Part shown: positions 8,778-26,800 of the stretch, in pieces
Layout: each line of letters starts with the position of its first letter
Numbering within the stretch: the first letter of the stretch is position 1
From: Podarcis liolepis
Taxonomy: Eukaryota
Direction: 5' to 3' (one strand)
Length of the DNA stretch: 64,000 nt
Assembly: GCA_965112155.1 (NCBI GenBank)
Contig: OZ218098.1
Made by a program: the position numbers and the translations under genes
The notes under the pieces: generated by a model
What the model was told of the DNA's origin: nothing
Seen by the model: the letters and a program-made list of their open reading frames with translations, nothing else
Database searches by the model: none

Positions 8778-8862
8778 TTACAAACAGCATCCCTTCCTCT
8801 TGTTGTACTCCTCCAGGTGCAATGCCTGCTCTCTCTGCTTGTCCTCATGTGCTGTCAACAGT
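8778..8862 (-). CDS. CRACR2B: CRACR2B coding exon 17 (hypervariable tail, prenylation motif, stop)
   Basis: [30 protein letters not shown]; ttgcag| acceptor. Confidence 0.92.
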
Positions 8863-17800: not shown

Positions 17801-20800
17801 TCCAAGAAGTGTCAACACCCACAGAAATGAATGCATGAACAAAACAAATGAACAGTTAACATGTGGAGGTGTGGACAGGGCCAGAGGCAATGCTCATATG
17901 TTTTGGCAATCTACCTTGATTATCCAATATGCCTATCTAGTTGTGCTCTATATTTATATATTACTATCCCAAAGGAGGCCAAAGCTGTTCACATAGTTCA
18001 GAAATGTGTGAAATAACTTTGCTTATGGTGTTCTGCCCCTCCTCTAAATGCATGCAATGTAGGAAACTTGAGGGTGTGTATATGTTGAATCTCCTTGTTA
18101 TCAAAATTAGACTCACCCCCTCCTACCCACCTACACAGTCTCATTCAGTCACCAGTGCCCCACAGTCCCAAGTTCATCAAAGGGCAATTCCCCAAGGACA
18201 CCCATTGCCTCAACCTTAGTTCAGTTGAAGAGGAGAAAGGGAGAGAACAGTGTGACCCAACAGACCGACTGTGGTGACTACAGACCGACAGCATGCAGTG
18301 GGACACAACACAACATATTCAGCTCTGACCGTTTGACTGGCTTCTCCTCCACTAGGTATTTGCCTATCGCTGACCCCTTCTTCAAGAGGGGTCTTTTGCT
18401 TTCAAGTGCCTGAAAATTAGAGAGAGCAATTTGGAATCTGTCATCTAAGTAAATTAAGAAAAAACAACCACCATGTCACTTTGGGAGAGGCTCTCCAACA
18501 GTTAGTCAAGATTACCCCAGGAGCTGCCATTTTGTGGCTGATGAGACATTAAAAGGTTTTTCAGTTTTGGGGTTGGCATACAGAAAGTACTCAACTTACT
18601 TCAGTACCCCACTTGTTATTTATATTTAAAATTTAAATTCCAATAACAAAGAATGCATTCTCAGGATGAAAGTACAATTTCCCAGCTTTAAAATGCATCC
18701 CAGAGACGTAACAGTTCTGCACCCTGCTTCCAAAGTTGTGTGGATCGCTCACAACAGATTAATCATGATGGGACATTTATTGTGCTGAATACGGTTTAGA
18801 ATGATGAATCGAAAGATTATTCATAAATATATTAGTTGTTTCATTCAAGTGGGTTTTATTGTGTGCTTTGGGCAGACTCAGAACCCAGTCTTAACCATCT
18901 GATTGGACCTCTAAATGGTCTGTCATAATACAGTCATACAAAAGAAACACTTTACGCAATGGAACATGAGCACGAAAGAGGCAATTGTTTCCTGGCTGTT
19001 TCTCTAGCTCTTGCCAGCTTTTATTGGCTCAGTGTAACATTGGCATTTAAAAACAGACGATAAAGGAATATTGCATTGCAATGACAGCACACACAAGCAT
19101 GAAATATTTGATGAGAACGATAACAGGGTGCATGGCATTTTATTATGGAAGTCTGGATCACAGGCTCACATTCCAACAACAGCATGAATTCAGCAGTATT
19201 TTGCCATCACAATATTTGCTGTAAACACATACCAAAGACACATATGCTGTAACTAGACCCGTGAATGAATGGGTTGTACCTGGAGACTGGTTCCTAGACT
19301 TCTGGAAGGTGCATGCAGGTTTCTCATTAAGGGACACGCAAAGGACCAGATTGTACATGGCACGCAACTCCCTCCAAAACTTGTGGATGTATGGACTTGG
19401 GGAAACTCAGTTTCCATTCATAACACACAGCGGTACAACCAAGCGCAGTACAAAATGCAGAAGCTCAAGGCACAATGTTTTCAAATATCAATTTCAAAAT
19501 TAACTTCAGAATGTTTAGGATGGTAATCCGGATTAATGAACAACTGGGGACCTGAAGGGATTGGCAGAGGAAAAGAAGATGCAAGGAGCCGAGTAGTCCT
19601 CTGCAGCCTTGGAACTTGGAAAGGTATCAGCAGAGTTTCCACACTGTGCTTCAACTGTCCTAGTTTTGCACAGTATCTCAGGGCCTTACTAGAGTAAATG
19701 TTGGAAAACTCTTTTGAAATGCTTTTAGAAGCATCTGTGAGCAAATTAGACTAGGCCTGGAGTGCCTGATTGCTTGGTCCAATCTGAGAACTCAGATGTG
19801 CCCCTTGCAATCTCTTCAAAAGGATGAGGCAGGGGGCAAATCACCTGCTGGATCAATGTCTTAGCTGCACTTTGCCATGCCAGGCACCTGCTGTGCCTTT
19901 TAACTCTTGTCTTGCCTATGTACTGTGCGGACTGAAGCATCAAAGATTTTGGCAGAAACCAAAATCAAAGTTCAAGCTCTTCATCCAGCAGGGCATTTCC
20001 TCCCATTTAAGTGTGCATGGATCCACTCAGATTTCTCCCATGTTTCGTCTAGTTTGGCCTTCTCCCTCACAGTGCCAAATGATTTCCAGTGCTGGCATTT
20101 ATGCATAAACAGTCTTGGCATATTTAGAAGATTTTAATACTTCACTATTGCAAGGTCTCCCTGTTATATGTTGAAGCAGACTTGGAAATATGTCTTGCAG
20201 CGCTGGCAAACTGCCATAAACGTGCAGGCAAGAACAAGCCAGATATCTCTCCTACAGAACGATGCACTGTTAAACTCTGGCAACCTGATTGGTCCATCAT
20301 TATGTCACAGTGAATGAAGACTGGTACTGACTACCAACCAGGAATCTCTAGCTAAAAAACAGTACAGTTGCAAATCTAATGACAACAGAAACACCAGGCT
20401 AGGAAGGCCCTTCAGGCTTTAAAACCAAAAACCTCACCAGATCTACATTATGCCAGTATACCCCAAGTGTGCACTGGAGTTTGTGCTCTTCTCTATCTTA
20501 AAAAAGCAACAGCCTGCAAATGCTCCAACAGACAGACACAAGCATTGCAGTCTTGGACAAAAGAGAAATATACAAAGGGCCCATCATCAAGAGGCTTCAA
20601 GACAGGAAGTTGCTGCTTCATCAGCAGACTTCTTTTCTCCTTGATAATTCTCTTTGATGGTAGAAAAAGCCTTCTAGAAACACCATACTTTTTTTAACTA
20701 AGGCAAACAGACATCTTTTGTTTTTTTACTATTCTACAGCACACTCTTGCAATGGAAAGATTGCTGCAAATTACAGTTAGCATGAGCAGATATCAAGGGG

Positions 20801-23800
20801 TGTGTGTGTGTGTGTGTGCGCGCGCATATATAGTTGACAGGAACATAATGCAACATATTTTTTCTACTAGAAAAATTAGAACTCAACCTCCTTCATTCCA
20901 GTCCCTCCAGCATAGCTGTAGTTGGTACATCTTGATACAAGACTGAGGTTCAGAAAAAAGGGGGAATGTTTTAAAAAAGAAACAAATAAGGATCCTTTTT
21001 TCCATTAACTGAAGGTTTACATTTTACTTCAAGAGTCTGATGTGCTAACTCTAACCCATGCAACCTGCCTTTATGCAAGCACAGTCCACAGTATTATATT
21101 ATTTGTTTCTGCACTAAACCAGTTCTTTAAATCTGCAGAATGACTGTATGCAGATCAAAAGCTTGCTCTTTTTGAATTCCCACATCAGATGCAATCTGCA
21201 TGAAGAGTGGTGGGTGCCTTTCTTCCCTGCATCCAACAGAACCTCCATCTCATTAATATTTACTTTTCAAAGAGGATCAGACAACAAAAGCCATTGTAGC
21301 TTGCCTGGAGCCCATATTCCACTAGAGAACAGAGATAGCAGACTGTCAAAGGGACAATCCAGCAGCTACTTTGACATGTGAAGAAAAACCAATTTATGTC
21401 CATATGAAGTCTCTCCACGTCCCTCCATGCCATACTGTAAATTGCTTTCAATGCGACCCCACTCAAGAGTTCTAAAAGGTATCCCATGGTGCAGCATGAA
21501 AGGGATGCTCTTCAAAAAAGACATTAAAGTGCCAAATGGGATCTGAGAACTCACTGCATTGCTCTCTCTGAACTGCAACTGCAGAAGACAGTTTCTCCCT
21601 GCTGCTTCTGCTGCATTTAATGATCTCATTGAGACTATGGAGATCACATGCCCCCAGATTTATCTGGAGATGCAGCCACAGGCCTAGTAATCAGAAAGAT
21701 GAGTCGTGGGACAGCCGGAGAGCCAGCCCACTCATAAGGCAAGGTAAAGAAGCCACCTCTGGTGGTGGAAACACAACAGGCGGTGCCCCACCAGCTCTCC
21801 GCCTGCCCCACCACTTCCACTGCAGCTGGAACGCTCCCTTCTAGGCCTGCAGAAAAGCTTTGTAGAACAGCTCACACTTGCTCAGTTTTGCAGTTGCTCT
21901 CTCTCTCCACTCCTAGGTAAGAAAGGCTTCAGTGGGGAGGCAGCAGCAGTGTATGTTGGGGAGGGACACCTCGTTTCACCCTCAGATGGCAAAACAGGAT
22001 GGGCCACCCATGGACAGACAGACAGGTGCACAGATGTTTGCACAATCATACCCAAAGATTAGAACATTGCACTGGAAACTTCCCTCTCCTTTTTACACAA
22101 AAACATACATAGCAGCTTCAATAAAAACATTCCTGCACCCTACGCTTGTACAACACTAAAGACTAGATAGCTGATCAGCATACGCCCCCCCCCCTTATAC
22201 TTCATTCCTGCCCTGCATTTGTGAAGCAGGGAAATCAGCCGCAAGAGGTCTTTTGGCTCATCTTCACATTTTGGTTGTCTGCCTCGCTGGTCTACGATCA
22301 AATCTACTAAGTGGTATGTTTCGTGGACATTACATCTCTCCTACCAAAAACAAACTGCCCAGGGATGGAAAAGGCCCATTCCAGGAGCAGGCCAAAGTAA
22401 GAGGCAGAAACAGACAAAAAGACATCTTGTTTTCAGTCTCTTAATTGTGGGCTGTGTGACAATGGAAGCCTAGAAGGATATAGGCACAAGGTGATATAGC
22501 AGAAGAACTATAGGCTGGAATGAGGCAAGGCAGTTCCAGAGATGAATTCCAGACTACTCTGCAGAATGGTGGTGGTGGGAAGAGAAAGAACATAACTAGG
22601 CCTTCTCCAAGCTAGATGGTAATGGCTCAGCCTTAAAACATGGAGGTTCAGCTACGGTTCCTCTGAATGGAAGCCTTACTGTACGAAGTTCAGGGTGTGC
22701 TAAACATTCTCTCCCCCTCCAGTTTGGAGGGACACCCAACTGTAAATGCTTTCTTGTAGAGTCAGGAGCCAGCAGTCCTTATTGCCCCCTTTGTAATTGC
22801 CTGGTTTAAAAATGTGCAGCTCTCTCTTAAAAAAATAATAATAAGTCCACATGCAGGCACTACAGGGTTTCTCAGTCAATGCCCCCCCTGTAAATGAAAT
22901 GACCCCAAGTGATGGCAACAACAGCAAGCTGCAAAGGGGAGGCGACGGGGGATTAGAATTTTCTTTCTCAGACTAACCAGCTTCTTGGCTTCAAAGGCAT
23001 CTCTCTCGTCTCGCAGTTTCTTGTTCATTTCCCTGCTCCAAAGGAAAGAAAGACACACAGAGGTAAGCGGTGGCAGTTGCTCTACACATACTGTGGTAGG
23101 GAACTAACAATCCTCAAAGAGAAGTGAGAAAGGGGAAGAGACCACTCCTTTTCACAACCACAAATCCCCATTCAGGTTTCACAGAAGCTTCCTGTGGCCT
23201 AAATCTTCACTGTAGAAATGGCTTTGGTGCTGCTCTCAGACATTATTTTAGCACCATCTATTGCCACTGGGGAACTGAATCACCCAAAGCACTGTACAGC
23301 TTGCTGCTTAGGTCAAGTGGCAGCCCTGTGGGTCTGGCCAATTCCGCTGGTTTATTTGAATAGCTGACATAACACCAAGGAGCTTTTTTATTCTATATCT
23401 CCCTATACACGTGAACAAGCCCTCAAGGCCCCACCTTTACCTGAGCAGTTCCAGTTGTCGCAGGAGGCTTTTCTTTTCTTTCTGCATATTCTTAGAGACT
23501 CTGAATACATCCCTAGATTTAAAAAGGGAAGGGGAGGGGTTAGTGTTTTAAGGGTTACAAGTTTTGTCCTGTGCAAACGTTGATAATATGACCCAAATGC
23601 CAAAGCTGCTGGCAGCAATCAAGGGCAGAGGGTGGACTAATTAAATTAACACTGGGTTAGGAGCTGACTCCCATTCTTGCTCTCCATGACTTGCTGATGC
23701 AAAATATCATTCTCTTGGTTTCCAAGAGAAATTCCAGCTGAGGACCAAATTTACATGTACCCTTTTTGCACCCATCACACTGCTCTGCTCCCCAATCACT

Positions 23801-26800
23801 CCACCTCCCAAAGTACCTTTCCTGTTAAAAATGAGCCATTAGTCTATGTTTGCATACAGTTCAAAATAATAAGAATGTTTACTGTGCATACTGCGTATTT
23901 AAGTTAAAATGCCTACATCAGCTCTAGATTTTTTTTTATTACTAAAAATAACAACCCTGTACCATTTGGGACTTTCTATCTGAGGAGAAAAGGTGGCAGA
24001 AGATCTACCTACTGGGATCCTATTGTTCTGCAGACGTTACGTCCAAATTCTTATCCCGGTTTATAACTGAAGTCATGTTTTGGCCAATTCAGTATTAGAA
24101 AGTAGATTTACTCTTCAATAAAGCAAAGGATCGCCCAATTTGCAGTGACATCATACAATTTGCAGTGACATCATACATTTGACTGATTGCTGTGGAGATC
24201 AGTGTTATTGTTTGCCACATTGTTTGTTCTCAGACTGGTAGGAGCCATGGTTTTGACAATACAAGATTTGGATTGACCTTTTATGAATTGCTGTGGGGCT
24301 TGCTTTCCGAGCCATTTCTATCATGGTCTTTTAGGAAACGTAACCAGGGAAATGATTTTTATCTCTAGTTTACACAGAGCAGGGATAGCCAATGCGCTAC
24401 CTTCCAGATATCGTTAGACTCCATCTCCCATCATCCCTGATCCTTGTCCATGCTGACTGGGGCTGATGGGAACTGAAGTCCAAGAACATCTAAATGGCAC
24501 AACGTTAGCTACCCCTGACAGAGAGAAAAGAAATCATGTTACTAACTCAAGGCCACATAGGAAGTAGATTTGTGGAAGAGAATAAAAACATCATGCATGT
24601 TCTAATCCTTTAACTCAGTCCTGGAAGCTAGAAAGTGTTCATGCTTACAGACCCTCTTTAATTTTATTTTATAAAAATAATGTAACACTTGATTGTAAAA
24701 CAACAACAAAAACTACCTCAAGGTGGTTGTCTACCTATTTGGGTAAGGCTTGCCTAAACAAAAACACTTTTAGCAGGCGCTGAAAAGAGTACAGTGAAGA
24801 GACCTGTCTGATGTCAATAGTCAGAGAGTTCAAAAATGTAGGTGCTGCCACACCAAAAGATCAATTTTTTACAAATGCAAACCAGGTACAGTGGTGCCTC
24901 GCAAGACGAAATTAATTCGTTCTGCGAGTTTTTTCGTCTCGTGAATTTTTCGTCTTGCGAAGCACCTCTTCAAGCAATGCACCCTGGGTATTAACGGTTT
25001 TAAGAAAAAGGAAACAAACTTGCAAGATGTTTTCGTCTTGCAAAGCAAGCCCATAGGGAAATTTGTCTTGCGAAGCAACTCAAAAAACGAAAAACTCTTT
25101 CATCTTGCGAGGTATTCGTCTTGCGAGGTACCACTGTATTATGTGGCACCTGTAAACAGTGCCAGTTCTGCAGTTTGCAGTAGCCACATATTATTGCTAT
25201 TCATTCCTACATTCTGTAGTCCCACTGATTAACTAATTAGCGTAAACCAGCATTACACAGCAAAAGCAACTGGCACTTTTCATTGCATGTTCTACAGCCC
25301 CACCCAAACACACCTGTTTTTCTGTTCCTGCTCTAGCTGGGCTTCTTTCTGCAGCTGTTGCAGGTGACCTCGGGCTACCTCCAGCTCCCATTTGCTTCTC
25401 TCCAGTTGGTCCAGGAGATTGTCGTTCAAGATTTTCAGCCTCTCATTTTGCACCCGCATTTCCAGCTGCTCTGAGCTCTGGGACTGTAACTGATGTTCCA
25501 GCTAAAAATATGTAAGAAATCAAGATGAACAGATCTGAAAAACCAAAAGTACAAAGGCATCAGTAGCCAGTGTCTGCAAGCAGCTTTGAGCTGTAGGGGA
25601 GGCAGAATAAGAATATGTTAAATTAAAAAAAAGTTGTACAAAGGAAAACAGAAAGCAGAGCAATACATCTGTGAGGTTTTTTTAGCTGCAATGCATTCAA
25701 GTACATTAATAACGATAACATGTTAAGGACCTGAACCAATGGATTTAAGTTACTAGAAAGGAAATTCCAACTAAACATCAGGAAGAACTTTCTCACAGTA
25801 AGAACTGTTTGACAGTGGAAGCGATTCCCTTGGAAGGTGGTGAATTGGAGGTTTATAAGCAGAGGTTGGGGGGCCATCTGTCATGGATGCTTTAGCTGAG
25901 ATTCCTGCACTGCAGGGTACAGTAATTACCATGGTATCAATACCCCAAAGACCTTCTAGCTGCATTTTCATTCCCTATTGTGAAGTGGTCTTTTGTGGTC
26001 CTAATCTATATCCCTGTTGGTCACATGAGTGGATAACCTCAGAGTCATAGAATTGAAGAGTTGGAAGGGACCCTGAACTGAGAAAACCCATATGGGGGAA
26101 TTCTTAATCTCCTCTCTGTTGTTTTGCCCCAGCGTAACTGCTCTTTAGTTTTTAAACAACCCAGAGCAAATACTGACACTGACTTACCCAAACTGCACCA
26201 ATAACGCAAATTACACAGTGTTATCTCTCAGCCGCATTCCTATAAGAGGATATTATGGCATGATGATAACGTCATGTGCAAACAGAGCAGATGGCCTTCC
26301 TTGGGTTGGTGGAGGTGGAGTCACTTCTTTGGAGCTAAAACATGAATGGTGCTGGCATCACATACTAAGGTTGTGGGCCTTGGAGGTTAAAGGAGGACAC
26401 TGTGTGCTTTGCAAGTGGGGCAGCAAGCTAAAAGGGCCCTCACAGCTGAAGGTTTAAAATCCTGGAAGGAACTTGGCATCTCAGGCACAAGAGCCCAAAT
26501 CCAGCTCTAGCCCTGTACATGTGTAAGAAGCGATGACTTTGGTGTCAAAAGACACCGCCAGCCAGTTCAACGGGACCTGTGTAGACAATGCAGAGGGTAA
26601 AATCCAAATTCAAGCAAAAGAAACAAGGGGCACCCCCTCCAAGTCACCTTTTTCTGGTGGTATAGCATCTTCTCAAATTCTTGTTCTTTGCTCTGCAGCT
26701 CTTTCTGAAGCAAGCTGCTCTTCTCATGCTTCACTGATCCCTGCAAAAAGCAGATAAATTGGTGCTTTTCCTTTTTTTCTTCACTCCAACGTTCAGCATA

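Follow-up and report, generated by a model that had tools for sequence, protein, structure and literature searches.

In a window of 64,000 nucleotides from the wall lizard Podarcis liolepis (assembly GCA_965112155.1, contig OZ218098.1), which is the whole stretch of DNA analysed here, the minus strand carries a gene assigned to CRACR2B (EFCAB4A). Exon 9 of this gene is very probably a composite terminal exon, which gives either a short form of 405 residues or a Rab form of 696 residues. The short form predominates in the RNA of the samples examined, and its mature transcript there consists of exons 1 to 9, a 33-codon extension read through the exon 9 donor and a 3' untranslated region (3'UTR) of about 4.1 kilobases (kb). 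An earlier reading made from the sequence only had proposed that a single splice donor chooses between a poly-Cys short form and the Rab form, and this interpretation was largely supported. The elements of the proposed switch, in window positions, are the following.

22978..23032, minus strand: exon 9, common to both isoforms, ending in phase 0 on the full codon CTG; acceptor AG at 23034-23033.
22972..22980, minus strand: switch donor CTG|GTTAGT, with its GT at 22977-22976; the intron that it opens (intron 9) is 4.6 kb long.
22879..22977, minus strand: read-through extension of 33 codons, with a basic stretch, Pro, CCCC and a His-rich end ...GGH.
22915..22926, minus strand: four Cys codons TGC TGT TGT TGC, read from the sequence, a candidate S-acylation cluster.
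22876..22878, minus strand: TGA stop of the short isoform, from translation of 23031-22876.
18330..18409, minus strand: exon 10, the first exon used by the Rab long form alone, with a ttttcag acceptor and the same continuation in the long proteins of other taxa.

The donor departs from the consensus at -2 and +3, as read directly from the sequence, and its GTT AGT is translated as Val-Ser in the short form. The 372 residues encoded up to the end of exon 9 and the 33 of the extension make up the 405-residue product. The sequence-only reading had given the donor at 22978, the 33 read-through codons, the Cys codons and the lengths of 405 and 696 residues, all of which were confirmed by translation and by mapping of P0176, the 696-residue EFCAB4A of Podarcis muralis. 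At least 33 open codons are found at 24% of the start points in intron 9, so that chance alone could give such an open frame, and the decision falls to homology and RNA.

The peptide of exon 9 and the tail was compared by phmmer with 1.84 billion representative proteins. There were six matches, five of which are CRACR2B-like C-termini, the sixth (P0004) being a repeat protein. The EFCAB4A of echidna (P0003, 406 residues) is aligned from residue 357 to its last residue, 406, with an E value of 1.8e-7, and ends in ...RLMNLRKRGLAPQFRPAPCCCCCHQDPNLLAGGH. The partial protein of the giant panda (P0006) contains ...RRKALAVARLPGAPCCCCCCC... and ...ARLPGAPCCCCCCC... Two products of Logan contigs (P0001 and P0002) show 76-80% identity; P0001 has exons 8 and 9 spliced and the donor read through, and the Logan transcript contigs P0001, P0012 and P0013, from other sauropsids, encode complete or spliced short forms. 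When the echidna tail region was the query, 185 proteins were found at E <= 0.01. The 120 of them that were listed come from turtle, birds, snakes, frogs, a caecilian, a newt and very many non-human mammals, and nearly all of these 120 have a run of four to seven Cys near the C-terminus. A full-length turtle short isoform as query added the short forms of coelacanth and whale shark, together with many proteins of about 700 residues that contain the Pfam Ras domain; such long forms are found in turtles, alligators, birds, lizards, sharks, a chimaera and a lungfish. The peptide of exon 9 and the tail matched no Pfam family, and a word search with the 51-residue peptide was empty, a result of little weight since the search covered only proteins of 28-89 residues.

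Every protein compared is common up to ...FEAKKL and then diverges, and in all taxa compared the end of exon 9 is the last residue common to long and short proteins. The short forms continue with VSL[RK]K[KR]...P...CCCC(C).H...GG[HQ], and the long forms with [AV]PQSKK.LLKKGS..G.YL.[ED]DKPVKR..., which is the sequence of exon 10 in the window. A run of three to eight Cys lies at an equal distance from the junction in nearly all orthologues. The short form of Varanus (residues 355-408) is 90.7% identical to window positions 23034-22879. The lizard tail itself shares 20 of 33 residues with turtle, 21 of 32 with a bird (sandgrouse), 15 of 32 with echidna, 16 of 30 with coelacanth and 14 of 31 with whale shark, each of these five comparisons having p <= 0.0005 in 2000 shuffles; in the same five species, the 17 residues ahead of the Cys run are significant alone. 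To eutherian tails the similarity is weak once the Cys run is set aside, the horse family giving p = 0.005. Eutherian proteins show ...RRKAL..ARLPGP.CCCCC(C).. after LRD[DE]RD, and the homology of their tails is suggested by the identical position, the Cys run and the intermediate character of the echidna sequence.

Turtles, birds, gecko and snakes have a tail of 33 residues, echidna, newt and axolotl one of 32 and coelacanth one of 30; in most non-mammals it is 30 to 33 residues long. A stop codon that has held its place for hundreds of millions of years shows that the tail is coding sequence and not intronic drift. These data bear out the proposal that the tail is conserved coding sequence, since from sharks to mammals this exon end is followed by an orthologous tail whose stop lies at nearly the same codon. 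They also agree with its proposed resemblance to the mammalian CRACR2B tail, which is end to end in echidna and takes the form of the Cys-run motif in eutherians; the mammals compared were echidna, mouse, the horse family, whales, bats and non-human primates. The tails of the non-human primates and other eutherians are consistent with the human tail that the earlier reading had described.

The RNA data on positions 17900-23899 consist of Logan contigs from three closely related Podarcis-like organisms (X1, X2 and X6), which differ from the window by 1.5-3%, and of one single-cell RNA run (X23). In X2 and X6 a joint from 23440 to 23031 has GT..AG ends on the minus strand, and the contigs are therefore RNA. 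This joint links exon 9 to the exon upstream.

23440..23512, minus strand: exon 8, 73 nucleotides, defined by the RNA joint to exon 9 (X2, X6) and by tblastn of P0176.

Exon 8, exposed by the RNA joint, lies 407 nucleotides upstream of exon 9, and a loose contig end past 23514 matches an exon at about 25300. One X6 contig (record 16) has exon 8 spliced to exon 9 and then runs on to 22862, 116 nucleotides past the donor. In X2, one contig (record 10) is unbroken from 23035 to 21253 across the donor, with a depth equal to that of the spliced exons upstream. The depth of the read-through and 3'UTR in X2 was 59-71, compared with 48.6 for the exon 8-9 joint, 41.9 for the contig of upstream exons (record 12), 5.8 for intron 8 (23100-23299) and 9-13 downstream of 18700. 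The corresponding values in X6 were 17-38 for the read-through and 3'UTR, 12 for the joint, 0 for intron 8 and 0-1.7 downstream of 18700, and in X1, where the joint was not seen, they were 18-22, 0 for intron 8 and 7-7.5 downstream of 18700. All six single-cell reads of X23 fall within 19300-20500. Among the differences listed for X1, X2 and X6 there is no indel inside the 33 tail codons; at a divergence of 1.5-3%, differences in the tail among these organisms carry little weight. X2 further contains an unspliced contig of intron 8, at about one tenth of the spliced depth.

The high RNA depth ends at a group of candidate polyadenylation signals close to exon 10.

18784..22875, minus strand: 3'UTR of the short isoform, about 4.0-4.1 kb, from RNA depth; its 3' end is approximate, 18784-18984 depending on the run.
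18776..19144, minus strand: four AATAAA signals at 19144-19139, 19025-19020, 18860-18855 and 18781-18776, the only ones in intron 9.

The high-depth contigs end at 18984 in X6, 36 nucleotides past the hexamer at 19020; at 18838 in X1, 17 nucleotides past that at 18855; and at 18784 in X2, immediately 5' of that at 18781-18776. The cluster lies 370-730 nucleotides upstream of the exon 10 acceptor. The four minus-strand AATAAA positions predicted for the intron were all found, with no others within intron 9. In the whole window there are 93 AATAAA on both strands against 54.7 expected from shuffles, so that the presence of the hexamer alone is weak evidence, and the intron 9 cluster matters only because the RNA depth ends there. 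Transcripts ending in intron 9, as had been proposed, are indicated by spliced RNA that crosses the donor and by the drop in depth at the cluster, poly(A) tails not being seen. One further X2 contig (record 5, 3886 nucleotides, depth 12.6) contains exon 10 with both flanking introns unspliced, over 17901-18648 and past 17901, and therefore transcription passes the AATAAA cluster at about one fifth of the 3'UTR level.

Two other explanations of these data were considered. According to one of them, the read-through is intron retention or pre-mRNA, its 33-codon frame is due to chance, and the Rab form is the sole real product in the lizard. The frequency of open frames in intron 9 would allow this, and unspliced X2 contigs do occur in intron 8 (5.8) and around exon 10 (12.6), while for Podarcis muralis the only public protein found is the long form. 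The tail, however, shows residue-by-residue homology with the C-terminal ends of short CRACR2B across jawed vertebrates and has a conserved stop position; the read-through depth is equal to or above that of the spliced upstream exons and 5-10 times that of the remaining intronic stretches, and in three runs it drops at the AATAAA cluster. We consider this explanation extremely improbable, and a chance open reading frame (ORF) was rejected on tail homology, the conserved stop and RNA depth. According to the other, the 4-kb stretch of high depth is a separate intron 9 transcript (a gene, an expressed repeat or an antisense RNA) that abuts exon 9. Against this, X6 record 16 holds the exon 8-9 splice together with the 116 nucleotides past the donor, X2 record 10 spans 21253-23035 unbroken with a depth equal to that of the joint, the depth begins exactly at exon 9 and not upstream, and the 4-kb stretch has no ORF of note. 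A separate transcript is thus very unlikely, even if the contigs carry no strand, the six single-cell reads are in both orientations and the assembly is interrupted by a repeat at 20790-20835 and again near 22862-22888.

Several points weigh against the composite terminal exon itself. The exon 9-10 joint (22978 to 18409) was found in none of X1, X2, X6 and X23, and the long form in Podarcis is predicted from the gene model P0176 and the conserved Rab exons. The unspliced exon 10 contig means that pre-mRNA is present and adds to the intronic signal. No poly(A) tails and no pile-up of reads were seen in the RNA contigs at the proposed 3' ends. The contigs of X1, X2 and X6 show neither strand nor true ends. 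Finally, the mouse and armadillo tails without the Cys run have no significant similarity to the lizard tail in the shuffle test.

The assignment of the gene as the CRACR2B (EFCAB4A) orthologue, rather than its paralogue CRACR2A, follows the NCBI/UniProt names of the best matches, some of the shark and lungfish matches carrying the name 4B-like. Two database proteins, P0176 and P0167, were placed on the window by tblastn, and exon 9 with the read-through served as the query peptide. P0176 is distributed over 17 exons in the window, from 33876 to the stop at 8780-8778 on the minus strand, with about 100% identity in the exon cores, and the junction between its residues 372 and 373 corresponds to that between 22978 and 18409. 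EF-hand_6 and EF-hand_7 were found by Pfam on both proteins, and the CRACR2B coiled-coil motif LRD[DE]RD.FEAKKL is visible in the translation of the window. P0176 contains the Pfam Ras domain with an E value of 6.5e-50, which the Rab exons of the window also match. The long form thus has EF-hands, a coiled coil, a Rab domain and a C-terminal double-Cys motif within its 696 residues, the last of these being encoded by the final exon.

8778..8862, minus strand: last coding exon of the long form, ending in ...KRKGCCL and a stop, a Rab-type double-Cys prenylation motif.

In the proposed switch, use of the weak donor would join exon 9 to exon 10 at 18409 and give the 696-residue EF-hand/coiled-coil/Rab protein with a prenylatable GCCL end. 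If the donor is left unused, translation would proceed through 33 more codons, the mRNA would end about 4 kb further on at the AATAAA cluster, and the 405-residue protein would be equivalent to mammalian CRACR2B. The choice of isoform may be a kinetic competition between splicing and cleavage/polyadenylation. In the secreted/membrane switch of immunoglobulin mu, the last common exon contains a suboptimal 5' splice site, which is in competition with a poly(A) site further downstream. As in immunoglobulin mu, the two outcomes in the lizard would differ in the C-terminus and in their relation to membranes. Unlike in immunoglobulin mu, the AATAAA cluster is separated from the donor by about 4 kb and is close to the next acceptor, and, in place of a transmembrane segment, both CRACR2B products would be cytosolic with putative lipid anchors.

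In cartilaginous fishes, turtles, birds and squamates the long and short forms part at a single residue, and the two-isoform arrangement therefore predates the split of the jawed vertebrates. The tail begins with Val-Ser in shark, coelacanth, newt, turtles, birds and lizards, and Val-Ser is the donor GTNAGY read as codons. This position is occupied by GS or SS in mammals and MN in echidna, by DT, DN or NT in frogs, by LN or LS in caecilians and by AS, AG or VG in some snakes. Only short proteins were found for mammals, frogs, caecilians and those snakes among the matches listed. The replacement of Val-Ser where only short proteins are listed would be explained if the Rab branch had been lost several times and the donor had decayed. 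Mammals would then descend from a two-isoform ancestor and would have lost the Rab branch. The earlier proposal of an ancestral two-isoform locus agrees with this distribution; its other part, the loss of the Rab domain in mammals, is suggested, but not proven, by the absence of a long form among the mammalian matches listed.

Mammalian CRACR2B/EFCAB4A proteins (about 394-406 residues) have the same architecture as the lizard short form and the same tail position, with a basic stretch, prolines, four to seven Cys and His near the end. They differ from it in having Gly-Ser, Ser-Ser or Met-Asn in place of Val-Ser, and in eutherians the part after the Cys is longer and rich in Arg and Pro. No Rab-bearing mammalian CRACR2B was present among the matches listed. 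The paralogue CRACR2A also produces two proteins from one gene: CRACR2A-S, of about 395-405 residues, with EF-hands and a coiled coil and no Rab domain, and CRACR2A-L/Rab46, of about 700-730 residues, with a C-terminal Rab domain and a prenylation site (PMC8303950, PMC6504896). On the origin of the CRACR2A forms the literature says no more than that they involve alternative splicing (PMC6504896). The suggested parallel with CRACR2A-S/L stands at the level of domain content (PMC8303950). The short form of CRACR2B ends in a conserved poly-Cys tail, and the comparison with CRACR2A-S covered domain content.

CRACR2B does not figure in reviews of the large Rab GTPases, which name Rab44, Rab45 and Rab46 (PMC8303950), and the literature searched yielded no publication on CRACR2B isoforms or on a CRACR2B long form. 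We advance tentatively, with slightly less than even confidence, a broader reading in which the ancestor of jawed vertebrates had CRACR2B as a fourth large Rab, with an S/L switch, the Rab branch was lost repeatedly with the decayed donors fossilised as coding sequence, and the mammalian protein is a lipid-anchored remnant without Rab. On this reading Val-Ser was retained, from sharks to birds, in all lineages that still have the Rab exons, and its replacements in mammals, frogs, caecilians and some snakes arose independently of one another. Mammalian CRACR2B would correspond to the short arm of an old S/L switch, as in CRACR2A/Rab46.

A run of Cys beside a basic and hydrophobic stretch in a soluble coiled-coil protein is the usual context of S-acylation, as in SNAP25, cysteine-string protein and PLSCR1. 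The C-terminus of the CRACR2B short form has a Cys cluster beside basic and hydrophobic residues, conserved across orthologues, and this suggests that the Cys run may be S-acylated and may anchor the protein to membranes. By analogy with Rab biology, geranylgeranylation would be expected at the CCL end of the long form, and the two products would plausibly carry different lipid anchors, as the sequence-only reading had suggested. No publication on palmitoylation of the CRACR2B/EFCAB4A tail was found in the literature, judged by title or abstract. The main functional rival to a lipid anchor is a metal-binding or redox role, in which the short isoform is real and its Cys/His tail binds zinc or copper, forms redox disulfides or serves as an interaction or degradation signal. 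This role would account for the His kept after the Cys run (HH..H..GGH in sauropsids, H.H..EGH in salamanders and GSGH in mammals) and for the extra Cys and His that follow the run in frogs and caecilians. Adjacent cysteines, however, have poor geometry for a classical zinc site, and their place by a basic and hydrophobic stretch is the acylation context described above; we regard such a role as rather unlikely. One match, P0005 (287 residues, Acipenser sinensis, flagged UNVERIFIED_CONTAM), has a tail that starts with VSLRQRV, lacks the Cys run and is rich in His (..DSGHAHHYWHHPFNHGHY). A His-rich tail without a Cys run is in favour of the metal or redox role; it may be a different type of tail in some lineage, or it may belong to a contaminant organism.

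The human CRACR2B gene is one of three loci validated for ribosomal frameshifting at codon repeats, which a downstream RNA G-quadruplex enhances and which reached 3.2% in a reporter (PMC12809536). The text of that paper does not name the codon repeat involved in CRACR2B. If the repeat were the Cys run, the conserved tail would double as a recoding site. The poly-Cys tail of CRACR2B is an ancient constrained element and likely a membrane anchor. The lizard switch, as a composite terminal exon, would offer a test bed for the membrane targeting of a calcium sensor, whether through a Rab domain or through acylation.

Automated gene models of other sauropsids include the short isoform in Carettochelys (X2), Apus apus (X2), Rhineura (X1/X2), Varanus and Sphaerodactylus, with the same read-through tail, VSL[RK]KK..CCCCC..HGG[HQ]. 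Both isoforms are annotated in several species (Carettochelys, Apus and Rhineura), and many others have short-only or long-only models. No Podarcis protein of about 405 residues was present in the protein collection searched, so the short form seems to be unannotated though dominant in the RNA contigs. The present analysis corrects the Podarcis annotation, which in that collection holds the long form only.

Some minor features of the locus were also observed. The 3'UTR contains a simple repeat at 20790-20835, at which the assemblies of all three organisms break. It also has, in X2, an 18-nucleotide insertion at 21842 relative to the window, and several other small indels in the UTR are found among the three organisms. 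In the turtle Lepidochelys kempii, the isoform X2 model (P0138, 515 residues) continues after ...FEAKKL with histone H2A-like sequence containing Pfam histone domains, and it looks like a chimeric gene model that joins exon 9 to a neighbouring or intronic histone gene.

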